A stretch of DNA of 64,000 nucleotides, from NCBI GenBank assembly GCA_964106645.2, contig OZ067038.1. One strand, 5' to 3'. Under the pieces are notes generated by a model. It was not told where the DNA came from and did not search any database. It worked only from the letters and a program-made list of their open reading frames with translations. Both the position numbers and the translations under genes were made by a program. Source of the DNA: Podarcis pityusensis (taxonomy: Eukaryota). Shown here one piece after another: positions 3,008 through 44,054 of the stretch (position 1 is the first letter of the stretch; each line of letters begins with the position of its first letter).

Positions 3008-3009
<2 letters not shown>

Positions 3010-5029: not shown

Positions 5030-5327
5030 TACCCAGAAATATAAAGTTGAGGTGTGTTTTAAGAGGCTTTTTAAAGTATACTTTAAATTCCTGGTTTTAT
5101 TTACATTTTGAAATGTTTTGATCCATTTCTTTTTAACTTTTGGCTTTTATCAACAATTTTCAGGCATATTTTATTTAAACTGCTTAGATATTTTTTATGA
5201 TAAAGTGGTATACAAATTCTGTCAAATAAAATAAACACAATATATAACCCTACTTGCGAAATCGGGAGGCAGAGAATGTCTACAGCACCATTCTGCTTTG
5301 CTTCATCTTCTCTGATCAGGATCTTAA

Positions 5328-5588
<261 letters not shown>

Positions 5589-6922
5589 TGAAGAGAAGAA
5601 TCCAGCCTGTACTCCCAAGAAATCATCTTTTAGTGTGTTCTTCAAGCTCTCTCCTGTGAAAACCGAGCTATAACTTCAGTAGAGGATTTCTAAAGCTTTG
5701 GGTGTGTGAACCAGATGGGGATTCTGCTATCCCCATATCACATCTCAGCAAGTTGCAGATTTGGTGTGTCCAATTATTGAGACTGAATGAGCGTTTGGCC
5801 CCAGTTTTCAGGAAGAGCACAACTTTCATAGTGTAGCCTTCCAAGTTTAGAAGCCTGCTTTGAATGTTTTTCTGCCCTTTCTCTGGCTGGGAGAAACTGT
5901 CCAGCTGTTCTAGTAATGGCAGAAAGCCCTGTCTCCCCACCCTTCTCTGCCACTCCCTTCCTTGTAGCCTGCTTACCTTCATGTGTTGTACAGAAGGATG
6001 GATGTTGGGCTTTCCTTTTCCTTTGTATAAGACTGCTGCATGATTGACAGCAGTGAGGCTGGCACGTAGCCCCACTGAGCAAACGCCACACATGTGCCGT
6101 CGGTCTCCCAGTGCTCCAGCTGCTAATTACGCAGCAGGTTGTGTGGCCTCTGCTGATGGCCCTTGAGCACTGGGGAACATAAGTGTGAATTACAGAGGCT
6201 GGGATTGAGAATGATTTTTCCATTAAGGCGATGCTCGGATAAAGCTGGCAAGTAGCCTGGCTCAGCTACTGGCTGCAGTCTTCTAAGTGACGGCGAAGAC
6301 AAGGATTCAGCCGGAGGCAGTGGTTCTCTAGGGACTCTCACTGTGCTGTTCTCTACAAGCCATTTCCTGTGCCCAAGTTTAGGCTCCTATGCTCAGTTAA
6401 TGGTCTCGCCATGGAGGCATGAGGTCAGATAAAGAATACACAGAAAGTGCTGCTGTGCTCATGGGAATAACCAGTGCTATTTTTCCAGAAAAAGAGGTGA
6501 CAGAACTCACCTCTTGTTCTCTTACAATGGCAATGGCACCCACCTGAGAGGTGCGTTCTGGCTGGGGGCAAAAAGCACAGGGAAATAGCAGTTTGCCATA
6601 TCCTTGTATGGCCTGTAGTTTATACCTGGCTCTCTCCATGTGATTCCAGACCCACAGGCAGTACAGATGTTTGTGTGAAGACATAGGTCAGTCTGTGAAC
6701 CAGTCGCTGGTTGAACTGGTGTGTTACTAGTTCACAACAACAGGGTATTGTGTGTGTTCTCAATTTCTGGAATCAAACATCCATATTTCCAAGTACTCAT
6801 CTATACTGTAAAGAAGCAGTGTTTGTTTTCTTCACTAGTGTCCATGCATTCAGAACCAACCCCATTGACAGCAGAAAATGGATTCTCAGCGACTCTTTTG
6901 AATGGACCCTTGGTGTTGGTGA

Positions 6923-7102
<180 letters not shown>

Positions 7103-7314
7103 CTAAGGTAAGATGGTGGGGAAATGAACAAAGCATATAGGGAAAATGCCCACTTCCCCAAATCATCGGCTGCAACTTAAGTGCTTGAAGAGTTCCTTTC
7201 ACCTCCTGAATGGGGCAAAACCAGAAGCAATGAGCATTAAAGGCACTGTGCTGAGTTCCTCAGTCTTGTTCGCAGGGGGTGATTCCCTTAGTTGTTCATA
7301 TTTATGAACTAGAT

Positions 7315-23029: not shown

Positions 23030-24708
23030 CTAGAATGTGACTGACTTAGACATTTGCACCATGGGAGGGCAGCCGGGGTAGAAATTGTTATCAGAATGAG
23101 TTTTGAAAACCTTGGGTGGGATTTTTGGCTTTGGCCTTTGAAGGGCAGGTGAACCACTCAAAGTGTTCCGTGACTTCTGCTCACAGTCCCTGGCATCCCC
23201 ACCCAGAGTTTCCATAGCTACAGGAGGATGTGTGTCAGCATCACCTGCATCATGGCAGCTGGCTTCTGGCAAGGGCAGAGCCACTTGCTTTTTGCTTGAG
23301 AAGTCTTGCTCAGTAGCATGAGCCAAGTGAAGCGGGGTGGTAGTCTTTACTATTCTGAAGGGGCTGTGCTGCTCCTGCAGCACCGGGGATGAAGTGGGCC
23401 GGGCTTCTGACAGCAACGGCATCTCGGAGTCCAGCTCAGATAAGATTGGCACACTGCCCCCACCAGGGTGGTTCTTGTGAGGATACAGCACCGCAAATGA
23501 AATGGGCTGGCCGTATTCGTTGGGCTGTTGCATCAAATCTACTGTTTCCCAATTTTGCCTCTGCAGATTTTCTAGCTCCCCAACTGATGCAGACTTGGGC
23601 ACTGTACACTTTAACACAGGAGCACAGAGCTCAGTCTGTGGTATTAAAACTGCCAGTTTCTTAGAACCAGGCACCTGTACAGGAGATTTCTCTTCTCCAT
23701 TGTCACCTTCAGACAGGTTATCATACTGAGATGCATTAGAAGGTCGCCGTTGTCCATCCTGAAATGGGAGAAGAAGAGCAGCAAGTGCTTTGGTCGGACA
23801 TGGAGCAGCTGTGCTTTCTGACAAGTCACATGTTGTGGACTGGCTATGTTCTGCCATAGAAGACAAGTCTGGACTTGGAGGCTGGTACAGGTGATCTGGA
23901 AGCAGCACAACATCTTCAGATAATAAATCCTCAGAGGAGCAGGTGATGCTCCCATCTTGAAGAGCTGAATCATTGCACACAGATGATGCCAACTCTGAGG
24001 TTCTTTTCTCTTCAAGAGATGGAAGCAATGGCACTTGGCAGAATATCTCTGACTCCGATACTGTCTCTGTACTATTGGGGGTGATAGACAGGTCTGCTTC
24101 TAAGGTCTGGCTCTGCAAGTGAGACTCCTCCCAGAGAGAGTTGTCCATTGGCAATCCATCTGTCTCACCTTGAAGCCGCTGGGGAGCAGCATGGTCTATA
24201 TCATCTATAAAAAGACAGGGGTTATTTTCCTGTAAACTATACCTCTCTACGCCACTGCTCTCCAATGATTCAGCCACCTTACAGACCATCACCACATCCT
24301 GACTTTCTCCAATGACCTCAATATCATCCAGCATTATAGGACCATCCTCCAATGGGATTTCATTGGCATTTTCTTCTACTTGTTTCTCTTCCATTTCAAA
24401 CTTTTGGCTTGGCTGATGATGATTCTGGAATGGATTTTGGTGCACATCAGCTGGTTCAGCTTGGATGGGTGGTCCATTGGGTGGTGGAACAGAGACTATC
24501 TCATGCATTGCCTTATTTGAATTAACTCTTGTTTCGTTCAAGTAAGTAGGACTTTTATCTGGAGAAGGTTGCATTACAACATCTCTGTCATGGTTGAGAT
24601 CCCCGGCCGCCTTTTTCTGGCCGTTAGCTGCAACATTAGGCTTCACTGACACCGGATTGAGAGAGAGCTCCAGCCCCAGAGGTTTCTTGGGGAATTCTTC
24701 AGATTTTG
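23030..24708 (-). CDS. TBC Rab-GAP coding exon 13 (long disordered C-terminus, stop TAG)
   Basis: ttttcattacag|CA AAA TCT GAA: (A)KSEEFPKKPLGLE... as in USP6NL KEDEYPKKPLG. Contains RRPSNASQYDNL and ends MSKSVTF*. This is the 565-aa ORF in the track. Confidence 0.93.
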
Positions 24709-25044
24709 CTGTAATGAAAAGCCACACATTAGTTTCTTATTTTGAATCCAAGTGCAACAATGAAGGGCAGCTGAAAGGAACCCATACTTTCTGTAGCCCA
24801 ATTTAATAAGTGGTCAGGAAAGGAACAACAGCCTGTCAGTCTAGTGCATCTAATTCATATATATTCTCCCCCCCCCCCAAAAAAAAATATTCATGGTGAT
24901 ATTTGCAGCTCTCACCTCATCTGATTTAAATGGGGTTCTTTTTTTAATCCTGCATTAACATTCACGCACATATGCAAACAGCTCAAGTAGGGCTCAGAAG
25001 GTATTTTGAGTGACATACGTGAGAATGCCTTATAGACACACAAT

Positions 25045-25330
25045 GCCATGAGGAACAACTCAAGAGATCTGGAGATATTTAGTTTAGGGGGGGAAATATG
25101 ACTAAAGGGAGGGACATGATTGAGGTTTATAAAATGATGCATGAGGTGGAGGAAATGGAGAGATAAAATTCTCTCCCTCTCATAATACTAGAGCTAAGGG
25201 TCATCCAATCAGTAGACTCAGTTGCAGGTGAGAGCCATTGCCTCCATACTCTGCTTCAGAGCTTCCTAGTGGCAGCTAGTTGGCTGCTGGATACTGGGCT
25301 ATTAGATGGACCTTAGGAAGAGCCCTGCTG
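25045..25330 (+). mobile_element. CR1 LINE 3' fragment
   Basis: GGGACATGATTGAGGTTTATAAAATGATGCATG...TCATAATACTAGAGCTAAGGGTCATCCAAT is a typical CR1 ORF2 C-terminus, followed by GGGCTATTAGATGGACC. Confidence 0.7.
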
Positions 25331-25595
25331 GATCATGCTCATGTTCATACTGTACATATAACCTGACAGAGCTTCCCCCCAAAGGCTAGGAATTGCTGAC
25401 ACCAAGCACTCTATTTAGAACTCCTGGGCTTCTTCTAGAACCACAGTTCCTAGTGTGTTTCATGAAAACTCATACATACTCCCCTAATTGCATGCCACCA
25501 CAGCACCACACCATTCTGATGTAGTGCATGGTTTGTAGTGTCCCACTATCAACAGATAAGGTCAAATACCACCCCTTCCCCGCATGGAGCAAATA

Positions 25596-25945
25596 CTAAA
25601 TCATGGGTGTGTTGGACCAATGACCATTACCATTTGAGACAGGCCCATGAAGGCCCATGAACTCCTGAGCCAGACCTGAGGCAACATCATCTTGGATGTT
25701 GAAGTCACACAAAACCACAGTTCTGGGTTCCTCCAACATCACACCCAAGACAAACTCGGCTGGCTTGGTCAGGGTGGGCAGCACACCAACAGAATCCCTA
25801 GTTGTGTCTCTTTGCCCCAACATCAGATGCAGGCCCCCCAGTCCCACTTCGAGAGGAGAGGGGCTTCCCAATGGTGGCAAGTGAACTCTAATGGAGTAGA
25901 GCAACACTTCCCCAGACCCTGCCTCTCCAGTCTTGGCCTTTGAAA
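25596..25945 (-). mobile_element. L2-type LINE endonuclease (APE) fragment
   Basis: Degenerate translation ...EEPRTVVLCDFNIQDDVASGLAQEFM..., matching the VLGDFNIH motif. Confidence 0.65.
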
Positions 25946-26108
25946 GGGCTTTGTGTTTGTGCTAATCGTTCCTCATCTAGCTTCTAACTGGAATTGGAGG
26001 CTAGTCCAATTGAATTCTGCTCAGACAGAGAGATGGGGAGGTGAAGGGAGTGTGCTTGGGTTCACAGCAGATGATAAAAATATTAACACATATTCTACTT
26101 CTGCTTAC

Positions 26109-26261
26109 CCGGGGGTGGCAGGTCAAATTTCATTTTGCGCAGTTCAGCCATGGATGCTTGCAATTGCTCAATTACAATATCATCTTCAAAATGCAAGGAG
26201 CCAGCAATTTTTTCTTGCAGGAATTCCCTTAGATCCTCTAGGGTCATTTTCAACAAGCGCT
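26109..26261 (-). CDS. TBC Rab-GAP coding exon 12
   Basis: 153 nt, tgccag|...CCG G|gtaagc. Encodes (K)RLLKMTLEDLREFLQEKIAGSLHFEDDIVIEQLQASMAELRKMKFDLPPP. Confidence 0.95.
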
Positions 26262-27104
26262 CTGGCAGGCAGCAGAAAATGCAGCACAATAAAGATACCA
26301 TGAGAGTTCAGACATATAGTTTCCACTGAATAGTGCTGATCTCAACAAAATAATAACTATCAATGCAGACAATAAAAAGGTAAAATTTGCAGTAAGTGTG
26401 AGTCATTGATACGTTCCGCTTTGTATGCCTTTACATGCCTTCTATACTTACAGTTTTCTCTGTCTCTAATTAATGCCCTTAGATCTAGCCTGGCGGAAAT
26501 TTATAGTGTTGCATAACTTCATCATTGTGGTATTTAGATTAATCAGAACCTCTTGCCTGAATAAAGCAATGTCTGGCACACTGCTATCTGCAGCCATATG
26601 CAGAACGGTTCAGACTCAGATTCAGAATAACACCTCTAGGGGGAGTAAAGCTGCACTCTATTACCTGGTACTGTTTGCATCAGATCAGCTTCTGACAATG
26701 TTGTTTGGTCATGAAAATGCACAATCTTCAGGAATTAAATTCTACGCGTTCAGAATAACTTCACAGAAAAGCATCTGTATTTACATATCTAATTTCAGTC
26801 ATAATTTGCGTGCAGAAATCTGTTCCTTTTCATTCCGCCTTTGGGGCCAATGTAAATGAATTTTTTGGCATATACATTGCTATAATACGTACACAGAAAT
26901 ACTACATATAAACACTGACTACATTATAACAGTGCAATGCATTTATTCTGTCCATCTTGCTCACAGTGCCCACATATTCTTGTCCTGGGGATTTCACTTC
27001 TGAACAAATAGCTTTCTTTGCATGACCAACAGGCTGGGTTGTGTCCTACCAAGTGAATGCCACTTACAAAAACTAACAATGCATTACAGTTAGTGCAATG
27101 GTCT

Positions 27105-27123
27105 TTAGAGCGCCATCAGACTC

Positions 27124-27160
<37 letters not shown>

Positions 27161-27195
27161 ATAACAGACTAAAACGACTACCTCCTCTGGAATTT
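27105..27195 (+). mobile_element. Penelope-like element end remnant containing a (TG)n microsatellite at 27127-27157
   Basis: GCGCCATCAGACTCTT...AACAGACTAAAACGACTACCTCCTCTGGAA resembles recalled reptile PLE termini. Confidence 0.45.
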
Positions 27196-28637
27196 GTCAG
27201 AAAAGCATTTCAATATTGCCCTTCCCCTTTTTTCTTCCACATGCACATGCTCTAACAAAGAAAAGAAAAATATGTCCTAGAAGAAAAGAAACCACGTAAA
27301 ACCAAATTGCATTGTGTCTCCTTTAAAATTCAGGACATTTAGTTTTCTGCGCACAATTTACTTTTAACCCTTGAACATGTTCAAGATGCTAGACTTAAGG
27401 CAGTTTTTTCCCCTTGCACAAAGTAGCAGCTAGCTAAAGCCATCTGGTAACCTTTATTGACTGTCTAGACACAAGTGAGCTCCACCCAAACTGTGGTTCA
27501 CTCAGACAGTTTTCACACAGATATATGGGTATTCCAGCTTATTCCTTAGTGCAGCAGACACAGAATGCATTTGCAAGGCAATCTATGAGGACTCCTCATA
27601 GGGTTGGCAGTGCTCATCTGTTATATACAAGACAACCTACATGCAAAAGCAAAGTTTTGTTGAACAAATCAGATAGATAAGTTTAAAATAAAATAAAATG
27701 ATTAAGTAATCTGAAACCTCTGTTCACAGCAGTGCAATGGTGGGGCTCAGCAGGCTGTGGGTCCACATATGTAAATGCCTCTGTTATCAGCCACTTGTTT
27801 TCAATGGCTCACTGCATCAATCAGATGAGTTCCTCCCCAAAACAACAAATGATTAAATATCCGCAGTGGCATAGGAATGGATGGAAGAAGAGAACACTAA
27901 GACTGCACATTGGACTGCTGCACATCTAGCTAGCTGTATTGTTTATATATCTCCATTTGGTGGCTTACAGAGAACGTCACTACATGGGAGTAATATAAGT
28001 GACTTCCAGGTACACTTGGCACTCGGTCAATGCCCTAATAGTTGGGTTAATATGCAGCAGAGCAGCCAAACAAGCCAGTACTACCCCTTATAAAGTAAGT
28101 TCTGTAACAGTAAGATTTTCTGGAACATATGTAGGAAAAGAATTGTGGTTTCGGCTTGTTTTGAGTTCATCTGACCCACAATGCATTCAGCTCCGTGTTG
28201 GTAAATATTTGGTTAACAGATCCAGCTTGAGTCACTGGATGGTGAAATGAAGAGCTTTCCTGCAGGCTCAGAAAGAGTTGAATTAGGTCATTAGTTTTCC
28301 TACTTGCTTTCACTGTGGCTTCAAGGAAGGCCTAGAAGATGCATCACGAAATGGCACTTCAAGAGTTGGTGTGGAAGTGCACGCTAACAGAGCCTGTGAT
28401 GCAGATGAGCAACTTATCACGACACCCATTTACTAAAGAGGCTAACCATTTAAACACGAACAAATGCAATATGAAGTCCAAGAATTGCCATTTTTATATT
28501 TGAGCCAATGAAAGGAACACAAAATATTTTGGGAAACTGCAGGATTCTTGTCCATAAAAATTGGCTCTCTTTTTATAATGTTACATTCCCAGGTTCTTAG
28601 CATCATTCAGACTGAACAGTCGAGAGAAACAACTTAC

Positions 28638-28737
28638 TTTTATGCAACTTGAGGATAGTGTAGGCCATGGCTGTCAGAACCCTCTCTCCTTCCAGAATGT
28701 AGATATCCCATAGCCGCAGAGTTAAAGTAAATGGGGT
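28638..28737 (-). CDS. TBC Rab-GAP coding exon 11
   Basis: 100 nt, aaacag|...A|gtaagt. Encodes [33 protein letters not shown]. Confidence 0.96.
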
Positions 28738-29142
28738 CTGTTTATAATATTAGAAAATTTAGATGTTATACATTTGCACATAAACCACAATACACAGCCA
28801 CAGTAGCAAAATGTCCTTTATCAAATCAATACATATCTTCAAGCCAGAGTCAAGTCTATTTGTACTTTGGTATTAATTATCTTTCCAGCAAGTAAATTCA
28901 GACAGATGTGATTCCCATTTGGGCACTTTAACGCTAAAGAGCAAATTAGTCCAACTGACAATCCTATGCATAACAGGACTTTTCACTTATCAGTCCCATC
29001 TTAATTTAGATCACTATCCTAATTAATGAAAATACAAGCAGAATACAATATTAATTTTGATCAGGCACAAATTATATGGTGCAAGGAAAAAGGACACTGA
29101 AGTCATAAGCACGTTGAACACCTCATTCCTCAAGACCCATAC

Positions 29143-29208
29143 CCGGTCAATGAAGCACTGAAGGAACCATTTTGTTGTATAAATCCCTGTAGACATCTGC
29201 TCCTTGTC
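29143..29208 (-). CDS. TBC Rab-GAP coding exon 10
   Basis: 66 nt, cccttag|...CGG|gtatgg. Encodes DKEQMSTGIYTTKWFLQCFIDR. Confidence 0.95.
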
Positions 29209-29688
29209 CTAAGGGAGAGTACAAATGAGGAAAATGTTCACTGAGCAGACAAGTTAAAGGGTTGCAAACAATATTTCTTTTAACTCTGAAAACTGGCATG
29301 CTTGAAATATCCTTGTATTTCCCCTCAAATGTTAAATGGCACAATAACCATGTACTGTAGTTATGTTTGAATTTGATAGCCATGTCCTGTCAGTGGCTGA
29401 ATTACTCTCTCATTTTACCTTGAAAGTGCTGCCTGCTTCTAGCTTTCCTGTAAATTATCCAGATTTTTTAAAGTTCCTCATTCTGTTCAGCCATAATTGC
29501 AGAATAAATTTTTGAGATAAATAACACATTCTCCATTAACAGGAGCAATAAAGGTTTAAAAAGGAAGTGGTGCATGATGAAAAATGTGCTTGTGAATATG
29601 TGAACAAAAGATGATACTTCGATAACTCTATATTTAGATGGTTGTTAACCTGGGCTCCATTAGGAGAAAGAGTAGGGTATACAAATAA

Positions 29689-29689
<1 letters not shown>

Positions 29690-29723
<34 letters not shown>
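29690..29723. repeat. (CA)n microsatellite
   Basis: CA run about 30 nt from the exon 9 donor. Confidence 0.95.
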
Positions 29724-29724
<1 letters not shown>

Positions 29725-29755
29725 CAAATTTTCACTTAACCACAGAAATTTTTAC

Positions 29756-29850
29756 CATGTGCTTCTTCAGCTTTGGAAAGAGTTTGCTTAAGATTGCCTC
29801 ATGATGGGCTTGGAATCTCTGTAGCTTTGGGAATCCAGGAATGAAAAATC
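29756..29850 (-). CDS. TBC Rab-GAP coding exon 9
   Basis: 95 nt, ttccaag|...ATG|gtaaaa. Encodes (G)[31 protein letters not shown]. Confidence 0.95.
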
Positions 29851-30848
29851 CTTGGAAGGAAAAAGGGAGGAAAAGCACAGAGTCAGAAGGAATTAGAAAG
29901 AAAAAGAGCAGCACAACATCTGATCTGGGTGCAATAATGGGGACCTTTCCTAAAATGCCCAAATACCAGCAGTTCCAAGCAAGGTGAATGTCAAGTGTGC
30001 ATATAAAACTCTAGTGTGTTGTCCATAAAACAGAGTTTTACAGTTTCATATTTGGACAAGATCTGGAAGGAACTCTGCCCATGGATGCTGTGGCAGACCA
30101 GAACATCCAAAAGGTTGAGTAATTTTTATTTTCCAAAAATACCTTGTTCTTAGCCAAGACTGCTCATAAGACTGTGATTTGAGTTTCTTTGGGCCAGGCC
30201 TTGTTCATCCCTGATAGGGTTACTGCTAGTTACAACAGTAGAATGCAACATGGCATCACAAACTTCTAATATCACTAAAATTCAGCTGATTCCTTTAAAC
30301 CCAAGTTGTTGTTTTTTAAGGAGAGCCGGAGGACTCTTTTGGTCCTCTTTACAAGCCAAGACATACGCAGAGGGATCAAGGCGCTGGTCAAAGCGACCTC
30401 TCAAACTTTAATCTCCTGTTACTTACAGGATTATACAAACTACCCTCCCTTTTTCAATAAAATACAGTCTGCACAGAGATTATTCTTCTCTGCTCCTTCC
30501 CAAAGCTTCAGCATGACAAAGGAGCTTAAATGTGGCCAAGTTTCAAACAGACCAACATTTTCTGGATGTGTTTGAACAGTTGCAATTAAGTATTGTATTT
30601 TGCTACATATTTAAAGCAAAGTCCTGTAGGTACCTAGGTATCACAATATTTCAAAGTTACAAAATATTAATCAAAGTACAAGGGCCTACCCTCGTTCCAT
30701 TAAGAGACTTCTCTGTACACCAGTAGTAAATGCATATATTGGTAATGAGAGAGGTGTGAGGAAAAAAGAAAGTGATGACAGCCTAATTCCCAAGTCCAGC
30801 AAATCAGAACCTATTGTAAAGTGCCCTGGGAATATGATTGAAGAATGG

Positions 30849-30953
30849 TACAAACGTTGGCTTCCTTGGCCAGTAAAGCGAGATGAGTGCTGCAACCCCA
30901 GAGTCTTTCGCGACTAGTCTTAACTGTCAGGGTTCCTTTATCTTTACCTTTTT
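30849..30953 (+). mobile_element. Sauria SINE 3' fragment
   Basis: GCGAGATGAGTGCTGCAACCCCAGAGTC...TCAGGGTTCCTTTATCTTTACCTTT. Confidence 0.75.
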
Positions 30954-31038
30954 ACAATATTTATGATAAAGGAAATAAACAAACAAAATATTGCAAAGGT
31001 GGCAGGGAAGAGTAAGAGTGTTTTCAGCTGAACCTTAC

Positions 31039-31159
31039 CATGCATTGCGTGCCTCTGATTGGTAAGTAGCTGTGCCAGTGCCCAAAAGGCATCCTCTTCA
31101 TTTAAGTACATCAGCAGGATAGCTGCAATCTGACTCATTCCTTGGCAGTAGCTCACTTC
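31039..31159 (-). CDS. TBC Rab-GAP coding exon 8 (glutamine finger YCQG)
   Basis: 121 nt, ctttcag|...G|gtaagg. Encodes [40 protein letters not shown]. Confidence 0.97.
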
Positions 31160-32794
31160 CTGAAAGATCCAAAGATGCAGAGACACATTACACAAGATCG
31201 GCTTTACAGGAGAGTAGACATTACACACAAAAATGAAAGGCAACTTTCCCATAAGTACATTGAATGGGACACAAGTTTTATCCAAACTATTCAGGCAAAG
31301 GGGTGACTAGTGATCCTTGGACATGGGAGTCTGCAGGAATTTTTCTGGGGCAGCAGGCCCTTCTGGGCAGATCTGGTGACTGGGCAGCAGAGGACTGAGT
31401 AGACCTGGTCTCTGAGAAGCTTGCATGTTAGATCTACCCCTCTCATTGTTTCTCAGTGGGTAGACCTGTCATCTGCCTATGTGTAGACCAGGCATCCAAA
31501 AACATCCCCATTTACCACTGAAATTCTCCATTCTTTCCTTGGCTCACTTCACTCACTCCAGCCCTTAATCAATTGCACTGGTGTTCAAGTCAGCTTCACA
31601 GCACTCCTCTGCCCCCTCCAATAAAACCCCCAATATGCCACAATGAACTAAGCTTCAAGGCTGCCATACACTATACCTCTACCCAGCAAAATGCATGTAA
31701 CACTTGGCTGGTGTAATTCACTCTTTCCCTATTACAGTCCTGCTCCCTGCATTATAGGCATAATAATGATGGACTTTTATCTGCCTTGGCATTTGCAGAG
31801 TAATAAAAGTAATTCCTTACTTTTGTTATAAGTGAATTCAGATAATATCACAACCGTTATAGGCAGCACTGCATGAAACAGAAGCACTGCAACACATGCC
31901 ACTTTAAATTCTTGCTGGATAGCCAATTCAAAGAATAGGATAAGCATCTTCTGTTAAAGGGGGTGGGGATGAGTCTCCCCATGTTCATGGAAACAGTAAA
32001 TTCTGTAGCTAATTTAAGCATATTCTCTCTTCTCTGCCCTGTGGCTGGAAGTGACTTAACTGACTGTAACAAATTGGAGTCTTCAGCTGTGAAGCTGCCA
32101 CTGAATGCAGCAAAAGAAGTCACAAAGAGAATTGACCAATATCTTCCATTCAAATAGTAGGTCAGAGTCACAGAAAAGCTACTCAGAAAATATGATGATA
32201 GCAAGGCCCAAATATGCGGCTGTGTCTTTCTTTGTATAAAAACAGAGCTATCACAGCATGGTTGAAATCTGCAGAATTTCCAGTTTCATGAACAACCCCC
32301 ACCCCACCCCACACCCATTAATTGTTTTGGTTTTTGCTTCCAGCATCATGAATGTTTCTAGCAGCACCTGGAGCTAAAGATATTAATGCAATTCTATAAA
32401 CATACCACCCAAGAAAACGATATACATTGAATCAAGTACTTTTTCTGTATTTAATGACCCTGGGCTCTTCAAGATAACCTCATTTTGCATTCCTCCCCAT
32501 TTGCTTCTGCCAAATTTGTGTGGAGGTTATACATTGTCACTGTTTATTGAGCATTCACCCTGATCTGTTTGTGTGGAGGTTATGTGACATCATCTGACCC
32601 TGCTGTTATCCCACAATTTTCAGCGCACTTTCCCATCGTTTTTCTATGCCACTCAATGCTTTCTGTACATTCATTTCTTGTACAAGAGCAGTATGTTTTG
32701 CCAGCACAGAAACTAAATACTTATTCTAAGCTAAACAAAACATTATTGCCATATAACACTTTTCAGTTTCCTGCTGAATCTGTTAACAGCTTAC

Positions 32795-32843
32795 CGTGTT
32801 GTAAACTGAGTAGGCTGACAGGACATGAAACAAGGCTTGTTGC
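32795..32843 (-). CDS. TBC Rab-GAP coding exon 7
   Basis: 49 nt, ttaatag|...ACG|gtaagc. Encodes (K)QQALFHVLSAYSVYNT. Confidence 0.95.
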
Positions 32844-33039
32844 CTATTAAAGAAAAAAAGAAAAAAAGGATGAGTAAAAACAACAAAGAGTGGGATCTGC
32901 CCTTTTTTTGGTATTTTATTTTTATTTTTTTTACTAGTTAAGGTGCGCATTATTTGTAGTGCTTCAGAAGAAGGATATTGTAACCGTATGAGAAACTAAG
33001 CAGTAGAACTGGCACACTGCACAATGGTAACATGTGCAG

Positions 33040-33278
33040 TGTATCTCCCCATATGGAGGATGCTCTCCCAAAGGAAGCTCACCTGGCAACTTCACCAGGC
33101 AAAAACATTCCTCTTCTCCCAGGACTTTGGCTAATTAAACAATATATGGCCCTTTAAACTGGGTGGGGGGTATTGTTTTTGTTTGTTACTATGGTGTGTA
33201 TTCTTGTGCTTTTATACTGCGAAGTGCCCTGTGATCTTCGGATGAAGGGCAGTAGAGAAATTTAATTAATAAATAAAT
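33040..33278 (+). mobile_element. L2 LINE 3' end
   Basis: CCAGGCAAAAACATTCCTCTTCTCCCAGG ORF end, then TGCCCTGTGATCTTCGGATGAAGGGCAGTA stem-loop and (TAAA)n tail. Confidence 0.65.
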
Positions 33279-33822
33279 GGGTTGTGGAATCCAATGAGCA
33301 CACAAATAGGTTGCAATATTCTCAAGGGTGCGCTAGCAAGAGGGAGACTCTGTTCTCCTGTCAAACATTATCTCTAAACAACATCAAGATGATTCTGTAG
33401 TCTGCCAGTTCTTGCCTTCCACCTTATCCACTGAAGGCTGGAACTTAACATCCTAAGCATGTTTAGGAAGAGGGAGGAATGGAGAATAGATTTGGAATGA
33501 GAAAAGGTGTGCCCCCCTCCCTCTGAAAGCAATGGGGTGATGTCTGGTTCTTCAGTAGTCTTTCAAGGGGCAATATTTATTTGCTACCATTTCTTTCCTT
33601 TGCTTAAATTTTCTTAGAATCAAAATGTACTCTATTTTTTCTTAATTACTCTTACATAATCATCTCCCTGGAGACTTACTTGATCTCTGTTCATTATGTT
33701 TTACACTCTTCCTTGACATTTTCCAGGAACTAGAAGCTTTCATTAAGCACATGAAGCAGCTGGACAAAGGATCACAGATAATATATATTTAAAATAGGAG
33801 GGAAGATCCATGAGAAACTCAC

Positions 33823-33932
33823 TTTACTCCATAGCGATCCCGGAACATGATGTGGTTTCGAAAGGTGCGATTGACATCAAGGTCTATCTGCTTGATTTCT
33901 GATGAGAAGCTCTTGGCTTGTTCTTTCATTTT
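33823..33932 (-). CDS. TBC Rab-GAP coding exon 6 (arginine finger IDLDVNR, R149)
   Basis: 110 nt, catgcag|...AA|gtgagt. Encodes [36 protein letters not shown]. Confidence 0.97.
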
Positions 33933-34499
33933 CTGCATGAAGGAAGATGGGTCAAAGCATTAAGAAAATATTTTGAAGTATCTGGAGGTACCTGAACCTC
34001 TGCTTTTGGGTGGCTTAACAACAGAAACAACAGAAAACACTAACTGAAGTTGATGCACATAATTTGGAATAATATAGCAGTCAGATTAGAGGTGTTACTG
34101 GTAAGGAAAATCTACTTATGTATGCGGTTTAACTAACTGTTGAGCAGGTATGGCTAACTTTTTTGGCCAGAGGACCATATTCACCCTTGGGTAACCCTCT
34201 GGGGGCTCCATACCAGTTGTAGCGGTAGCCAGCCCACACTCTCACATACATGAGAGTGAACCCATAAATAGCACACTGCCAATCTGTGCAGATCAGTTGA
34301 AGGGGGGCGTTAATCATCCCCTTGGCTCTCTGTAAATGTTTGGCCAGGGAGGAAGCAATTTGCATCCTTACTAGGGTGCTGGGGCTCTAGTGTGTCCACT
34401 TTATTTCCCCGCTTTTTCCCCTAATGCCACCAATAATATCTTGTGGGGTCTTGGGAGAGTTAGAAAAAAATGCTCCGAGAGCCGGATCAGAACTCTGAA

Positions 34500-34705
34500 T
34501 GCCAGATTAGAGAGTTTGACTAGGACCAGGGTTAAAATCTCCACTCAACTATTAAGTTAAACTGGGTGATTTTGGGCCCATCACTCTCTCTCAACCAAAC
34601 CAACCTCATAAGGTGTTTTTGAGGATAAAATGGGAAAGGGGAGAACTTTGACCTCTTTGGAGGAAATGTGGGATATAAGTGTAATAACAACTAACTAACC
34701 AAATA
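34500..34705 (+). mobile_element. Old tRNA/CORE SINE (Squam3/MIR-like)
   Basis: ACTGGGTGATTTTGGGCC CORE-like segment, ACCTCATAAGG...GAGGATAAAATGG, A-rich tail. Confidence 0.6.
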
Positions 34706-37636
34706 ACTTAAAAGAGTCTTTTCTATTGTTCAGTTATCTGGGGCTATCAAGCTATGGCAATATTCAAACACAGACAAACATTCTGAAATACTTTACAGTT
34801 ATCTCTTAGGCTAACTGTCTTGATGTAACTTTTTGCCATATCCCACAAAAGTCCCACCCCATAAATCTTCCCAATCTTCCCAGAGTCTTTTTCAAACTGC
34901 AGGTCACTTATGTTATTATTTTTACTCAAGGGAACATGCTGGGAAGTTCATCATATTCTATATAAGCCAGTCTGCTTGCATGCCAGACACTCCTGCTTTT
35001 CAACATAACCTTCTGTGTCTGCCCTCAAAGAAGCACATGGATAATGCATTACACTTTCATTGATGGAAGTAACACACAGATGCCCTTTGTGAAAAATCAA
35101 ACTGAAGGAAATAGTCCTGAGTTGGCAAAATGGATTGCTGACAGAGAAGGAAGAGTGTGTGTGCACACACTTTGGTCAGACACATAAACTCCAATCTAAA
35201 GGGGCATATAGAATGTATTTTGCATAGATGAAGGCGTGCTGGATTTGGATATGAAGCTGTAGCCAAAGCAAGCATGAATCTTTGTTTCTAGTAGCAAGAT
35301 GCTTAAAATAGTTTGGACGACAAAGGCCCATAGATTTTATGGGAAATCAATCCTTTCACATTCCCTTATGAAAATCTGGCTCCGACTTTCTTTGAGATCA
35401 CGAAGAGCTAATTTCTGGCCTCAGGTGGCACGAAGGATGAGGAGGATTATGAAGAGCCGATTTCCTGGATTTATGTTCATGAAAAGCCTATTATACAGTG
35501 AGTCTCTTGTTTATTGCAGACCCCTCAGGAGCTTAGTTAAACTGCTTGTGACTTTTGTTTATTCTAATCACTTGCTGTGTGACATGGCTAGGTGGGAACA
35601 TCCCCTGAACAGGATGCAAAGGCAATAGTTGAGATAATTCTCTTGATAACCATGCCTCAGAAGTACAGCTGTTTTAGTTAGTGGAAGTAGTTACTGGGAA
35701 ATGTTGGGATCGGTGACACGCCAATCATGTGTTCATAGGCAGCATGTAATTACTTTATACTCTGCAACTATCTGGATGTTTTGAAAGAACTGATTTTGTC
35801 ACGCTCTTTTGTAACCAACTGGAGTCATATGTCCATACTTCCAAGTTCCATGGATAGGCTGACAAAACATTGTTTATGGAACTCAATGGCTCAACAAAAT
35901 AAGAAACCGACAGATTCCCACAGACAAAGTGTCCTTCTCCTTCTTATGTTCTGAGGAAAGAAACTGTCTGAATTATTAAACATTGTACATCAAACATTTC
36001 TGATGACTCCAGGAAAAGAGGATGAGGGTTCTACAGGGAATTATTTGTGGACCCTGTTGTTAACTCCACTCTGGCTTCAGAAAGCATGTGGCAATCACAT
36101 GTTCTCTCTGAAGTTTTGGCCCATACTAACTGTGGCATATGCATATAATTAGGGAAATGACAGGGCCGTTTGAATCCCCCCCTTCAAAATGCTTTTGCTT
36201 TTCTTAATAAACACCACTCTCATTTACAGTACAGAACTGACTGTATAAATGGTGCCTCTGCTTTCAAAAGAAGCACCTTTGTGGCTTTTATATTATGAGA
36301 CACAAGACTGGCTGTGGAAAGAACCTTGGAGAAAAGAGGACAGCTCAAAAATTTTCAGAAGACAGGAAATCTCTTGCATCTGTGACAAGCCTGCTTTTAG
36401 AAATGGGATTCTTCCAGGGGTGTCAATGACAAATTGTTGTTGATCAGGTGCTTGCTACCAAGGAAAAAATCCCTAAAATCGGGATTAAACTGAGGTAGGG
36501 AGATATTGCTAAAGCAAATACTGTTATATACACTTTTGTTTAAATGATACTTACGGTACTTAATTTATTTTTTGTATATAAAAAAGGCTAAAAATCATAA
36601 ATAACATATGGGAGAAATCTCCAGAAAAAAACATGATAGATAAGTAAAAGTAACATATAAAATGAAGGTTGGTGTTTAGTCTGATTATTCTGTCTCTCTT
36701 CACAAGTTCCATATTATGCAGCACACAGTTCCCAATATATTGGTCATTGATGCAGATGATGCTGTTTTTATTAAAAGGAAGAGCAGCCTAGAAATCAATG
36801 GATAGAATCCTTAGATAAACAAAACTCTGCTCGTGCAATAGAGCTTTCCTGGTTCCCCTCCTACTACCCTTGCCTGCCCTCAAGCTGTTCCAGAGAGTCA
36901 ATGAGCCCCTGGAATGGCACATAATGCGATTCAAGGGGCTACAAGAAGATAGAGGAAAACTAAGATAATTTGGTGGGGCTGCCTTGCACAAGGAAATTTC
37001 TGTTCCTGCAAGATATCTCTGGTCCCAAGAATATGACTTGAATAGCGTTTTAGCAGTCAAATATACTTTGTTTCACAGAAGTACAGATATCTTTTACAAT
37101 CTTAGGTTTTCACACCCATATTTTTCATTTCTCGCATACAGTCTGCGTGTTCCTCAAGACTGTGCTTTTGTATTGGGGATATGACAGGTTTTCAGCATTA
37201 GGTTTCGCAGAGTCTTGTGTTTGGGAAAATGATACTCTTCTTCCTGGGAGTGATTCACTGCTGTGTAGAATATGATTGCAGAAGTATCATAGTCATCAAC
37301 TGGATAACTTTGGTCACATAACTAATTAGGACAATTTAGCATTTGATAAGCATTTTTTAAAAACATTTTTTCTCTCATTCATGCATTCATTTATTGGAGG
37401 GTATACATTCTCCTATTGTACAATTATGCATGGGAGAGCTCACTTACTCTCTATGTTTTTTTTAAACAGAGAAGGGAAGCATTGAACATTGTGCACATCA
37501 TATTTATGACAGTCAAATGCCTTCCTTCACTTTTGAATTAAAGTAAGTTAAAGTGCTAAAATATGAGGGGAAAAAAAGTGAGCTGAAAAACTTACTGAAC
37601 TGAAAGGGGGGGGGGGAGCAGTTGAGCGGTTGGCTA

Positions 37637-37801
<165 letters not shown>

Positions 37802-37848
37802 CTACACAGTTTTAAAAGACAAGTAAAGTAAATTAGCACAAACTGCTG

Positions 37849-37850
<2 letters not shown>

Positions 37851-37887
<37 letters not shown>

Positions 37888-37907
37888 TGTCTGTCTGTCT
37901 GTCTGTC
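37851..37907. repeat. (GT)n(CTGT)n compound microsatellite
   Basis: Seen directly. Further (GT)n at ~38090-38119 and (CA)n/(CG) at ~38480-38537. Confidence 0.95.
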
Positions 37908-38087
37908 TCTCAAATGCAACAAAACTTGTAACAGGTTGGCAGTGCTTATACAGATTATCTAGTCATTCTGAAATGAAATGTCCCAGTCAGATATCCCTTG
38001 GGGGAAGCAGAGGGGAGGAAGTCCCACTGCACTAGCGGGACTCATCGTGCTGACTTCAACTAGTGCAACAAATTAGTTGAATCTGGC

Positions 38088-38121
<34 letters not shown>

Positions 38122-38497
38122 ATATATATAAGGGCACTGATCTATTTAATTTTTGCTCAAGAAGCTCCAAGAATCTTGAAACAAGTGACTGTCAATTCAG
38201 CAAAACATTTTTTTACTTATTCCTCTCCATTTCACTCCCCTCAAGTTCTCTAGGGAATAATAAGACGAATAAGGCATTCTAGAGAAGGCCAGACCTTTAA
38301 ACAAAAAACAAAAAACCCCAGCATTGGCTCTTTCATTATAGACCAGCAGTGGGAAAGACTCTGCAATGCAGTCATAGAAATAAATGGGTGCTGTTATGAC
38401 TAGCACCAGTGCATTAAGTTTCACTTATATTCTTTGTTGAATCATGATTGTTTTAATAAGGCACCTGAATACACAAATGTGTGCGCACGCACACGCA

Positions 38498-38539
<42 letters not shown>

Positions 38540-40648
38540 GTAGCAGCAACGTAACACAAATTCTGCATCAGGAACAGAAGCACTTTGAGACATGTATACA
38601 ATTACCTCTTTTTACAAAATTATTTTTACTTCTGAACAGGAAAAAGAGGAACTACGCAAGGCACTGAAGCCTTTACCAACTGCTCAGTGAAATCCTATTC
38701 TCCCCATTCCACATCACCCAGCTTCTATGATTTCACCAGAACTTGTTCAGATATTAACATGCCTATTTGTGTATCCATAAAAGCTATACATTTTTCAAAC
38801 AGAGAGATTTTTAGGGTACCATATTCCATGCTCACTACAAAATTCCATGTTTATATAGTGTGATGTCTGAATACTACAGTATTCCTAACTGGACTGGAAT
38901 GTACTGATTCAATGAGAAAAAGAAAATGAAAGGTATTCGGGGGGGGGGAGGAATATTCCATGAGCAGAGGAAAGATTAAGCCACAATAAATACCAGTAGA
39001 TCATTAAATCAGGGTACAATGGCAGTACAAAAAATTATATGATACCCAGGATTCCAGGCCATCCCAGGCTAGTTAAATTCCTTTCCACATTGCTTCAGAG
39101 ATCAGTGGTAACTGCATTTTCTTGTACAATTAAGGAATCTACAGAGAAAGGAGCATATTTTTGCTATGGTTCTAAAAGTTAGATTTTTAATTAGTGCAAA
39201 CCCAACAGCATGTAGAGTAAATAGCTTCAAGCACTACTTCTCTGCCAATATTTCATTTCAGAGCATTGCAGGGAGCAAGTGCCCAACAAGATAAAATTAT
39301 AATGAACAAACTGCCTCTAGTTTATCTATCTGAAGTTCTCATCCACTTAAAATCAAAGTTGTAAAATGCCTCAGTGCCCTGAGAATCACTAATCACAGAA
39401 GGGCAGCCATTTCACTTTGAAACAAACTGTTTTAGGAAACAATAATCCACCCTGAGAAAGCAATTCCCTCTTTCCCTTAGTGTTTTTCTCTTAACTCTTA
39501 ACGTTTTGAAATAAGGAAGGATTTCCAAAGGCAACTGAAAGGATTTGCTCTGGATATTTTATTATGTTTTTATATGTTTTTTTATTCCGTATTTTTATTG
39601 CTATCTTATTGTTGATAAATGCTTTGAGATCATTTGGTGAAAATGTAGAAAACAAATTGAAACAAACCAACCTCTGGGAGCTAAATAATTTTACATGGTA
39701 TTCCAGAGCTGCTCACCTACTTCTTAGAAGGTGCTTACAAGAAGGAAGCATTTTAACTTTCCTTCATTTGGATTAGGGGCCATACACTCTTCAAATTACA
39801 GTACAACCAACTCTGCAAATAACTGCTTGCCAAATGCCACTGATCATAATCCAGGCCTCTCTCCCCCATCCTTTTCTCTGAAACCTGCAATTCAAGCAAA
39901 ACTAGTGCAATGTACACATTGTTGAACAACTCTGACTAGGAGCACTGATATTTGGGCTCCTTTTCCAGCATGATAAGATGCTTTAAGGCTGGTGGACTTT
40001 TTTAAGCCTTAGGCACAGTTGACTAAATGATCCATTTTTACAATTATTATTATATTTATATCCTGCTTTTTCCCTAGTCAAGGAGACTTACACAGATAAA
40101 ATAGAACAAGCTAAAAACACAGAAAAGACCATTGTTAAAATGCAACCGAACACTAATTACAATGGGACGGTTGTAGCACTAAGCATTTGAGATTTCATAT
40201 GTAGGGTGAATGACACAAAATGAACACTCCACCATTCTGTAATTGCTCTGTTGGGTCTAGTATGCTTCTTTCTGTAGTGAGCTAGCCATTCCCAGAATGT
40301 GCAGAGTCCTAATTCCACAATGCCAAATTTGCTAATAAATTCCAATTCAATTGGGGAGTCTCCTTTTGCTTATTCTTATGCCTTAGTCTGAGTATGACAG
40401 AGCATTATTCACCACAGAATGTTACTGAACAGTCAGACTCAGCAACTGGGATAAAGTACTGCTGTAATCAGAGGCCCAAACAATCTTCTTGAAAAATTTA
40501 CACACATTTCTCATTCACATAGCTGAAAGTGGCCAGAGGACAGAAACAAAGCCTTCAATGGCCTACTTAGTTTTCGGCACCACAATTGTGAAAAGAAAGG
40601 ACACAATACACTCTTCAGTCTTCCATTTTCTTAAAATAAAGGCTGGTA

Positions 40649-40874
40649 CAGTGGTACCTCAGGTTAAGTACTTAATTTGTTCTGGAGGTCTGTTCTTATC
40701 CTGAAACTGTTCTTAACCTGAAGCATCACTTTAGCTAATGGGGCCTCCTGCTGCCGCTGCGCTGCCACTGCACAATTTCTGTTCTCATCCTGAAGCAAAG
40801 TTCTTAACCCGAGGTACTATTTCTGGGTTAGCAGAGTCTGTAACCTGAAGTGTATGTAACCCGAGGTACCACTG
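40649..40874 (+). mobile_element. Tigger/pogo-like MITE, family B, copy 1
   Basis: TIRs CAGTGGTACCTCAGGTTA...TAACCCGAGGTACCACTG, TA TSD, internal TAACCTGAAG repeats. Homologous to 55710-55930. Confidence 0.9.
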
Positions 40875-40906
40875 TAATGCTACTAAAATGTGTTACAATT
40901 CCGCAC

Positions 40907-40987
40907 CTTTTCACTGTTTCTGTATTTTCCCCATTTTCTTAACATCTTCAGCCATTTGTCCACTCGTTCAATTTCCTGAAGTTTTTG
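40907..40987 (-). CDS. TBC Rab-GAP coding exon 4
   Basis: 81 nt, gttccag|...AAG|gtgcgg. Encodes QKLQEIERVDKWLKMLRKWGKYRNSEK. Confidence 0.95.
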
Positions 40988-41223
40988 CTGGAACAGAATT
41001 TTGAAAGTGTAGTTTAGAGGGTTTATTTCCAATTTGTGTGAGCAAGAAAGGAGGGAGAGCTAGATATCCAAGCCATCAGAATATAGAGTCATATGGTGCA
41101 TGTAAGACATTAGCTTTAAATATTTTAGCTTTAAACAGACAAGAAGGAATTTCCCCAACTGCATTCATTCCTTATGCTAGAAAGTAGAAGGTTCCAAATA
41201 AAATTTTAGCTCATATGCTACTT

Positions 41224-41361
41224 TAGGGGTAGAAAACCATTAGTTCTCCAGATATTACTGGACTACAACTTCCATCATCCTTGACTATTGGCCATGTTGG
41301 CTGAAAAGGATGGGAGCTGGAGTCCAACAGGATCTAGAGAGTTTGAGGTTAGGCACTCCTG
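41224..41361. mobile_element. Degenerate hAT-type MITE (7315-7450 family)
   Basis: CTCCAGAT...GGACTACAACTTCCATCATCC...GATGGGAGCTGGAGTCC palindrome, imperfect TSD TGCTACTT/TGCTATTC. Confidence 0.6.
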
Positions 41362-42091
41362 TGCTATTCCTTCAGTATTATTATCTTGAATCTCATCCAA
41401 ACTGTACAATGTATGATATGGCTTAACACAATGCTGTACAGCTAGGTTTGCATAAACCTACTCTGAGCATGGCAAATGCTCTTTCATTCAACTGCAACAG
41501 CACTTATGACCCACAAGCAAGATACTGAATGATTTGATGGATGATGGACTTGACCCTAAAAAAAGACAGGAATATCACAGAGGTGCTTAGACTCCCTCAA
41601 CTAGGTTTGCAGATCTAATGACTACAGTGCCACACTTTCTCATCTCTAATTTATCCATAATGCTCAACCATCCTTCTAATTATTGCCAGCAAAATTTACA
41701 AGAATTCAGCAGCTGACCATTCTTCCTCAGGTCAAGTTAAGCTGCTAAGCAGCCTCCCAGTTTTGCATGTGAAGCTTTGGTGCTGCATTTTAGAATCTAC
41801 AGAGGAAATATAATCAAACCTTCCTTGTGATGAAGTTCCATTATCTTCATAGCTGACTAAGGCCTAAACACAGTCATCTGGAAGTCTAATTGAAATCAGC
41901 AGGACTTGCTTCCAAGCAAGCGTGTTTATGTTGGGATGAAGAGCTATTATTATTTATCCAGAGAGCTAAGATTCTTATGTTAATAATTGCAGTGTCTTTC
42001 ATCACTTGCTATTGAAAAACAAACACAGCAGCAGCAGCAGCTGCCATCTCCCCCCAATTACTCTAGAGAAAGAAAAGCTCCCAGTTCCTAC

Positions 42092-42131
42092 CTTCTCCTC
42101 CAGAGCACTGCGGGTTGGTAGCTCATGCTCA
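42092..42131 (-). CDS. TBC Rab-GAP coding exon 3
   Basis: 40 nt, ctttcag|...AAG|gtagga. Encodes (H)EHELPTRSALEEK. Confidence 0.92.
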
Positions 42132-43102
42132 CTGAAAGATGAAAAATTCTAAATGAACCAATGCATAATGCAAGAAGTGTACAAGCAAAGTGATCCTGTA
42201 CAGAAAGGAGGTCTGACGGTATGCTTCAAATGATGGGGGGGGGGGGGACATAGGATTGTATATAAAGTAGCACTAAGTGACTCATTCCACCAGTGCAAGG
42301 ATTTCTGCTTTTGCAATGGAACATTTCACCGCTCTTCTCTCCCTTTACTGCCCAAAAATCTGTAATAGGGGCTCCTCCAACCCTCCATAGCAGATTTGGA
42401 GAGGCTACAGGGTGTGTATGAGTGAAGAAGGGAGGAAGTTCCACTGTGTAGGTGAAAATTCTTGCACTGATGGGATGCATTAGGTGGAGACTACCCATAG
42501 CAGCTTACTGGTCTACTACTTGGCTAAGGAGGTTCTTATTAACTTGACCATTTCTTTATTTCACATTTGATCAATGATGCCTGCCCCCAGAAAATGTGGA
42601 AACAGTGTCAGAAGGGAGATCTCCCTTGGGCTCTTGTTCACAGATGGATACAATACATAAAACAAAAAGCTATAAATTTGCATAAACCACCATAATAGAG
42701 GTGGCAAAAAAGAGGGGTTAAAATGCTACCCACTCTGAACACCCGAATCCCTCTAAAGGGCAGCTGTAGAAAGCTGAAACACTGCTGCATTTCCACGCTT
42801 TTCAGAAACTGTTTACATCCTAAGTACATAATCTGCCTGTATAAAGGAAACACAAATATTGATTTCCAAGGACCAAGCCCTCTCATAGTTTAGCTGTACC
42901 TTATCATGGCAGGAATTTTCATAAGCAACAGAAAGTGATTTCCTCTCTGCTTCTGACTTGCACAAGTGGACAAAAGTACTAGTAAAGGCACTTGGCTGAG
43001 GTACAGTGGTGGAGGACCCAACCATGACAGTGAAAGGGACGCAACTGCGGCCTTCAGCACTAGTTTCAGCAAAATGAAGAGGACAAGAAAAGGGTAACTT
43101 AC

Positions 43103-43188
43103 TGCAAAAACCCAAATCTGTCAGTGACTTTGTAGAGAGTGAAGTCAGCATCTTCCCATGGATCAATCTGAGCTCCTTCCTGCCTTCC
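43103..43188 (-). CDS. TBC Rab-GAP coding exon 2
   Basis: 86 nt, tttacag|...CA|gtaagt. Encodes [28 protein letters not shown]. Confidence 0.96.
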
Positions 43189-43988
43189 CTGTAAAGAAGG
43201 TTGCACAATAGTTTACACTATGGTGACTAACAGATGATATCATTTTGAGAAGAAATGGAGAAAATTTATGATGCCATGTGTTCTTACGTCATTTTTACTC
43301 ATCCAAGACTAGCCATGGGTTGATTTTGTGTCTTTTATAAGTTGTAAGCGTAAAGCGGGTCAGCAAAGTGAAGGGTGGGTATGAACTAATATTTGTACAA
43401 TGGCAGCTGTCTTGCCTATGATATGCACTGGGCACAAATACGTTGTTTTTGGTTGCAAGTACCTCACTTCTACAATGACTGCAGTATTACTGTTCTTCTT
43501 TGCCTGTGGCCCAGCATGAAATGGAGGGGACCATTTAAAAGATTATACCTCATGGACAAGAAGGATCAAGGATGGGAAATGAAAATGTAGCACTTATAGC
43601 TTTCCTTATCATTGTGTTTTGAGACCCTGAACCCTTTACTGAAGTTTCTGCTTTCTGCAGAATGTTGGGGAAATACATGTCTGGCTGCAGAACCAGAGGG
43701 CACACAGCGAAAACAAGCTGCGTAGTATATAGTCAATATACTGGGGCCAATTAATCCCTCACTTGCTAGGACTCCATGGTCCCTTCATCCCTCCAAAATG
43801 TATGAAAAACCAAATAATAAGGATGATTTGAAGATGGATGGCATTGATCAAGGGAAAATTGAATATCCCATATTGCTATTTTCTGAATCTGGTTGACTTA
43901 CTACAAGTTCCTGTGTTCTGTAGACAGTTAAGCCAAAAGAAATCTTTGGTTGGTAGCATATTAAGTGGGAGGAAAGCAAGGTTCTTAC

Positions 43989-44054
43989 CTTCTCATACTT
44001 AGCAATGATTTCTGCCCTTTCCTCTGCTATTAAGGCATCTATATCTTTCTTCAT
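43989..44054 (-). CDS. TBC Rab-GAP coding exon 1 (ATG at 44054; exon begins at 44062)
   Basis: cttacag|CCTTTGAC ATG, donor AAG|gtaaga. Encodes MKKDIDALIAEERAEIIAKYEK, similar to USP6NL LAQERAEIVAKYDR. Confidence 0.9.

Follow-up and report, generated by a model that had tools for sequence, protein, structure and literature searches.

The window analyzed here, i.e. the whole stretch of 64,000 nucleotides (nt) from the lizard Podarcis pityusensis (assembly GCA_964106645.2, contig OZ067038.1), harbors a gene for a TBC-domain Rab GTPase-activating protein (Rab-GAP) on the minus strand, at 44054-23030, and HRAS on the plus strand. An earlier interpretation made from the letters alone, hereafter the sequence-only reading, had described the former as a complete gene of 13 exons and 917 amino acids (aa). 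This was borne out by spliced alignment to the Podarcis raffonei protein P0001, in which 13 coding exons yielded a 917-aa product with no internal stops, and all 12 introns had GT..AG ends. Among the open reading frames (ORFs) of the window, pieces of TBC-like exons were apparent on the minus strand at 23-44 kb, together with a terminal ORF of 565 aa. HRAS and the TBC gene are arranged tail-to-tail, ~16 kb apart. Their exons are as follows.

43989..44054, minus strand: coding exon 1, aa 1-22, with the ATG at 44054
43103..43188, minus strand: coding exon 2, aa 23-50/51, one residue more than in USP6NL (GRQEG vs GR-EG)
42092..42131, minus strand: coding exon 3, from the spliced alignment
40907..40987, minus strand: coding exon 4, from the spliced alignment
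37694..37801, minus strand: coding exon 5, where the TBC domain begins
33823..33932, minus strand: coding exon 6, with the arginine finger R149 (IDLDVNR)
32795..32843, minus strand: coding exon 7, from the spliced alignment
31039..31159, minus strand: coding exon 8, with the glutamine finger Q186 (YCQ); border matched by RNA contigs
29756..29850, minus strand: coding exon 9, both borders matched by RNA contigs
29143..29208, minus strand: coding exon 10, both borders matched by RNA contigs
28638..28737, minus strand: coding exon 11, both borders matched by RNA contigs
26109..26261, minus strand: coding exon 12, where the TBC region ends; 5' border matched by RNA contigs
23030..24708, minus strand: coding exon 13, aa 359-917 and the stop, a long and poorly conserved tail in which EEFPKKPLG and SQYDN are conserved
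2372..7103, plus strand: HRAS, exon 2-like at 2372-2617, exon 3-like at 5358-5591, and the last coding exon at ~6980-7103, ending in CKCVIS and a stop

The first 360 aa of the lizard product are 100% identical to P0001. A search with the last exon returned the same protein (Podarcis raffonei LOC128417083, 920 aa, 98% identical) as the best ortholog, along with full-length orthologs in squamates, turtles, crocodilians and birds. Homology searches employed single exons or P0001 as query, while the joined 917-aa model was used only in alignments and trees. An acceptor-like CAG located 8 nt upstream of exon 1 suggests that a non-coding exon may lie further 5'. The last coding exon of HRAS carries the HRAS-type hypervariable tail; the 64,000-nt window yielded no first coding exon, which is probably situated beyond its start.

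Transcript contigs from a close relative (95-99% identity; 4 runs from 3 studies, their RNA nature being guessed rather than recorded) showed the junctions 26261|28638, 28737|29143, 29207|29755 and 29849|31038, with CT..AC ends as read on the plus strand. As these junctions coincide exactly with the predicted borders of exons 8-12, the gene is transcribed and spliced as modelled.

The introns also contain repeats. Positions 30841-31009, in the intron beside exon 8, are covered by the transcript contigs at a word depth of ~1,500-4,400x, many of the ends being loose, and probably belong to an interspersed repeat with high expression. (CA)n/(TG)n microsatellites occur at ~27090-27160, 29640-29730, 37850-37900, 38080-38130 and 38470-38560.

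The encoded protein consists of an N-terminal TBC domain (aa ~100-330, including R149 and Q186) followed by a largely unconserved tail of ~560 aa. Pfam domain PF00566 was identified in P0001 at E = 2.4e-59 over residues 103-311, and single lizard exons match it too. Both catalytic fingers are intact, in agreement with the sequence-only reading, and the TBC region appears to be under strong constraint, as judged from its 96% identity with the gecko and Varanus counterparts. Since, moreover, the closest solved chain is that of USP6NL (9ltp, E = 2.8e-161), the locus is expected to encode a catalytically competent dual-finger Rab-GAP with USP6NL-like substrates. Such a protein would inactivate endocytic or Golgi Rabs in the manner of USP6NL (Rab5/Rab43 class), R149 and Q186 being supplied in trans, and its tail might work via short linear motifs. 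EEFPKKPLG and SQYDN are the only conserved tail elements, and both are shared with USP6NL. The tail of mammalian RN-tre (USP6NL) furthermore carries PxxDY, an Eps8-SH3 binding motif, which is lacking in the lizard tail and was found in none of 12 clade B proteins (see below). This motif is present at position 744 in pika USP6NL. It is absent from two fish USP6NL proteins, and is therefore a weak criterion for USP6NL.

An exhaustive representative search with residues 1-350 of P0001, followed by a first tree and an inspection of cluster names, separated the vertebrate homologs into two clades. The main tree was built in IQ-TREE under LG+C20+F+G4 with posterior mean site frequencies (PMSF) from 48 rows and 350 columns; support is given as ultrafast bootstrap (UFBoot)/SH-like approximate likelihood ratio test (SH-aLRT). 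Clade A (100/97) comprises recognised USP6NL, i.e. pika P0132, the teleosts Scleropages and Oryzias, Varanus P0168 and the gecko Sphaerodactylus P0214. Clade B (100/100) holds the lizard gene together with those of a ray, paddlefish, gar, bichir, teleosts, coelacanth, lungfish, frogs and sauropsids, as well as marsupials and many placentals, and branching within it largely follows the species tree. Genes of both clades occur together in four genomes.

Varanus: clade A, P0168; clade B, P0007
Naja: clade A, P0414; clade B, P0026
Coelacanth: clade A, P0415-18; clade B, P0128
Pika: clade A, P0132; clade B, P0188

The lizard protein falls in clade B and not with the USP6NL orthologs, which makes its gene the squamate representative of an old lineage of jawed vertebrates that is the sister paralog of USP6NL/RN-tre. 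The claims that it is not USP6NL itself, and that an old sister gene of USP6NL exists, are both upheld, and clade B is represented in every jawed-vertebrate class sampled. So is the extra residue in exon 2, which reads GRQEG or GHRAG in clade B and in monkey TBC1D26 and TBC1D3G vs GR-EG in USP6NL. The statement that this sister gene is still intact in reptiles holds for the lizard but is too narrow, as intact forms are not limited to reptiles; the TBC regions of marsupials, for example, are 84-87% identical to that of the lizard. That the lizard gene is nevertheless a plain USP6NL ortholog could be argued from the many orthologs auto-annotated as 'USP6 N-terminal-like protein', from a TBC region 67% identical to that of pika USP6NL, and from the USP6NL structure being the closest match. 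This we regard as extremely unlikely, given the separation of the clades with ~100% support each, the occurrence of both a clade A and a clade B gene in Varanus, Naja, coelacanth and pika, and the Varanus clade A protein, which is 85% identical to pika USP6NL and 68% to the lizard gene. The lizard gene also adjoins HRAS, and not the genes flanking human USP6NL, which we take to differ from the HRAS neighborhood. A Varanus USP6NL query (400 aa) matched USP6NL of snake, gecko, coelacanth, frog and crane; no Podarcis USP6NL was among its matches, in a search that spans proteins of 220-700 aa only.

Nested inside clade B is a long-branched mammalian group. Its primate rows are a marmoset USP6-like protein (1374 aa), macaque TBC1D26, Chlorocebus TBC1D3G and human TBC1D3H (P0252, which came from the representative search and served only as an alignment and tree row). 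The other rows are colugo, two rabbit lineages (one of which is a 47-member cluster named TBC1D3D-like), a second pika gene, Arctic fox, warthog and mole. Support was 95/96 for the mammals within clade B, 100/96 for marsupials, 100/99 for placentals, 99/98 for colugo, lagomorphs and primates together, and 100/99 for primates. Approximately unbiased (AU) tests rejected a grouping of primates with USP6NL (p = 2.2e-6, log-likelihood difference 56.5), of all placentals with USP6NL (p = 6.6e-6), and of primates outside clade B (p = 5.3e-5). As a long-branch control, all non-primate placentals were removed, upon which the primates stayed inside clade B (100/100) as sister to the marsupials (92/95). 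With the Arctic fox protein as query, carnivores including mustelids, horse, hippo and six marsupials were retrieved, and then sauropsid and fish clade B genes, while no true USP6NL occurred among the best 120 matches.

Pairwise identities and motifs point the same way. Human TBC1D3H shares 40% of its residues with the lizard TBC region vs 35% with pika USP6NL, and the monkey proteins 50% vs 42%. In the 14 alignment columns that separate the two clades, marsupials have 12-13 clade B states and no clade A states, and primates 5-7 and 1-3, respectively. The A-derived states 64R, 124D, 129L, 210K and 250Q are missing from primates, and an NPGKY..MKE signature is common to marsupials, colugo, rabbit and primates. 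The sequence-only reading had listed six short strings in which the lizard was said to side with TBC1D3. All six were located in the lizard protein (16-22, 124-131, 207-217, 280-285, 308-312 and 354-360), the last of them, DLPPPAK, being present only once exon 12 is spliced to exon 13 (the unspliced ORF reads DLPPPGK). The USP6NL strings of that reading were all correct (IVAKYDR, DLYSKLKH, ALVKLFSGPKH, NLRIWD, KHLMK and DLPEPGK in pika P0132), as were four out of the six TBC1D3 strings (IIMKYEK, GRYQIMKE, ALVQLLASERH and TLRLWD in TBC1D3H). The other two, KRLTK and DLPPPAK, were unreadable in the human isoform as aligned, and the monkey proteins read KRLMK and DLPPPGS. The motifs IIxKYEK, GKY..MKE, QLL...RH and TLRLWD are common to the lizard gene and the primate family.

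A chimera of the two clades was also considered. In sliding windows of 50 aa, primates were closer to clade B than to clade A in nearly every window and no window consistently favored clade A; a chimera was rejected on these grounds.

On this evidence, primate TBC1D3, TBC1D26 and the TBC half of USP6 are, with high probability, a fast-evolving mammalian branch of clade B and not a recent copy of USP6NL, with the lizard gene as a dual-finger Rab-GAP ortholog; by the tree and AU tests this also applies to TBC1D28-29. The nearest relatives of TBC1D3 are accordingly the fast-evolving placental genes of colugo, rabbit, pika, horse, hippo, carnivores and mole. The proposal that TBC1D3 is no recent USP6NL offshoot is in this way supported, since the family nests in the placental branch of clade B and not within mammalian USP6NL. 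The word progenitor needs adjustment: the lineage is the same, but the lizard gene is an ortholog of the ancestor of the TBC1D3 family and not its literal progenitor. Nor is it a member of the core duplicon in the narrow sense, being single in the window, 917 aa long and intact in both fingers. It also evolves slowly, whereas the primate proteins are ~490-560 aa or fused to USP domains, are multi-copy and have lost R149 and Q186.

Several points weigh against this placement. The primate branches are very long (the end branch of human TBC1D3H is 1.26), and the AU tests share the long-branch behavior of the model. At lizard positions 139 and 183, all placental clade B genes share the A/outgroup state (D and G, respectively), so that either reversals on the placental stem or some exchange with USP6NL is needed. 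The membership of the primates in clade B is argued from protein phylogeny and motifs, and long-branch effects on this protein-level placement are a main residual risk. One could suppose that the lizard gene is indeed an old USP6NL paralog, yet that TBC1D3 arose from USP6NL in primates and is drawn into clade B by a long-branch or compositional artefact. The published derivation from USP6NL (PMC6920530, citing Frittoli 2008; PMC12871316), the very long primate branches, the clade A states at positions 139 and 183, the 1-3 clade A states of primates in the 14 columns and the placement of primates by protein rather than by synteny speak for it. We consider this improbable in view of the AU rejection, the persistence of the primates beside the marsupials when the long non-primate placental rows are removed, the absence of the five A-derived states, the shared NPGKY..MKE signature and the sliding windows. 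The argument for a USP6NL origin from exon structure cannot tell the two clades apart, because 13 coding exons are likewise found in the lizard clade B gene, which can be aligned to USP6NL over the entire TBC region.

Both fingers are kept in all non-mammalian clade B proteins, marsupials, horse, hippo, otter and fox. The Arg finger is lost in mole, one rabbit lineage and the second pika gene, the Gln finger in warthog, and both in colugo and all sampled primates; the fingers were lost piecemeal within placentals, a further correction to the sequence-only reading. The mammalian genes in question carry 'USP6 N-terminal-like' LOC names (koala P0385, opossum P0387, horse P0371, fox P0159, rabbit P0166/P0169, colugo P0206 and mole P0343) and represent the lineage orthologous to the lizard gene. 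Placental TBC regions are accelerated, with 48-69% identity to the lizard, and the genes are often shorter than that of the lizard and multi-copy in canids and rabbit.

The surroundings of these genes add a further line of evidence. In opossum and wombat, a 189-aa Ras-family gene is found 0.5 and 1.4 kb downstream of the clade B gene, respectively, on the opposite strand according to the gene tables, and is presumably HRAS. Relics resembling HRAS were found past the placental genes in four loci.

L001 11176-11280, minus strand: Arctic fox, exon 4-like, ~0.9 kb past the stop, E ~ 2e-6 (2e-7 for joined exons)
L005 20028-20180, minus strand: mole, exon 2-like with a stop codon, ~2.4 kb past the gene end, E ~ 1e-7
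L006 22930-22980, minus strand: horse, weak, same place and orientation, E within 0.06-0.09
L003 27987-28115, minus strand: colugo, weak, same place and orientation, E within 0.06-0.09

These placental relics lie on the strand opposite to the TBC1D3-like gene and keep the HRAS exon order, with exon 4 nearest the TBC gene; the fox relic resembles the HRAS-specific hypervariable tail. In the spotted gar, the downstream neighbor of the clade B gene is UEVLD, with UEV and LDH domains (L007 33030-38197, minus strand), which we take to be located on human 11p15, as is HRAS. No informative called neighbor was present within 10 kb at the rabbit, colugo, pika, mole and horse loci.

The linkage has its own weak spots. 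The marsupial Ras neighbors are known by length and Pfam family only, no HRAS relic was seen beside the rabbit and pika genes, and the alignment of the fox relic runs over the exon 3/4 junction for 5 residues, which makes a processed HRAS pseudogene possible at that locus. It might be held that clade B did give rise to the placental and primate genes, but that the relics resembling HRAS are processed RAS pseudogenes inserted there by chance and uninformative on origin, in line also with the individually weak horse and colugo matches. Chance would then have to account for four placental loci in four orders with the best HRAS match 0.5-5 kb past the stop, all on the opposite strand, for relics that follow the lizard order, exon 4 being closest and exon 2 more distant, for marsupials with an intact Ras gene at the same place, and for the HRAS-specific tail in fox. 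This is very unlikely in our judgment, and a microsynteny with HRAS probably connects the lizard, marsupial and placental loci, most clearly those of lizard, opossum, wombat, fox and mole. Since human HRAS is, to our knowledge, without a TBC neighbor, the simplest history would be that a segment with the clade B gene and HRAS was copied away from the functional HRAS locus in early placentals, and that afterwards the HRAS copy decayed and the original clade B gene was lost.

Three mammalian states of the lineage can be distinguished on sequence grounds: slowly evolving beside a 189-aa Ras gene in marsupials; fast beside decayed HRAS relics, and not live HRAS, in placentals; and, as placed by protein phylogeny, primate TBC1D3, TBC1D26 and USP6-TBC. 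Expansion has taken place outside primates too, i.e. in canids and rabbit. Arctic fox copies are found on at least 8 chromosome-scale contigs, one of them at the very start of a 132-Mb scaffold, raccoon dog has several more copies, and the rabbit cluster is situated on one chromosome. We consider it likely, if a little less firmly than the clade B placement itself, that an ancestrally HRAS-linked Rab-GAP of jawed vertebrates persists in active and near-ancestral form in lizards, birds, fishes and marsupials, and that its placental descendants include TBC1D3, TBC1D26/28/29 and the TBC half of USP6, which would be no simian copy of USP6NL but genes that have evolved extremely fast and lost catalysis. 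Within this lineage, primates, canids and rabbits would each have multiplied and spread their copies independently.

In the literature, TBC1D3 commonly features as a driver of cortical expansion that is specific to primates or hominoids. It has been described as primate-specific and exclusive to simians (PMC11610581), and as a recent and extremely divergent copy that derives from USP6NL by segmental duplication (PMC6920530; PMC12871316). The published TBC1D3-USP6NL identity of 34% (PMC12871316) matches the 35% measured here for human TBC1D3H vs pika USP6NL. In our literature search, TBC1D3 was nowhere connected with HRAS synteny, with vertebrate paralogs or with a second gene of USP6NL type. 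Hints are given by automatic annotation, in that some bird proteins are named 'TBC1D3K-like', and a homolog in Sparus aurata has the clone-style name si:dkeyp-19e1.3. The lizard gene itself is thus of a known kind, and the new element is the evolutionary reading of its lineage. If this is true, the divergence of TBC1D3 would be explained by a much longer history together with placental acceleration. A catalytically intact ortholog of ancestral type would be on hand in lizard, chicken, frog, zebrafish and opossum for functional comparison, and the losses of GAP residues and the repeated copy-number expansions in primates, canids and rabbit could be studied as parallel events.

Lastly, some minor observations concern the surroundings of individual genes. 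The rabbit gene P0169 (L002 1970-10430, minus strand) has a called homeodomain gene (227 aa) next to it and falls within the span of a called UQ_con gene (231 aa). Nine long ORFs in the flanks of the lizard window, including the 5' side of the TBC gene, had no Pfam match. ORFs at 62565-63534 on the plus strand of the window, with no Pfam match at E <= 0.01, resemble by eye fragments of a long interspersed nuclear element (LINE) reverse transcriptase.

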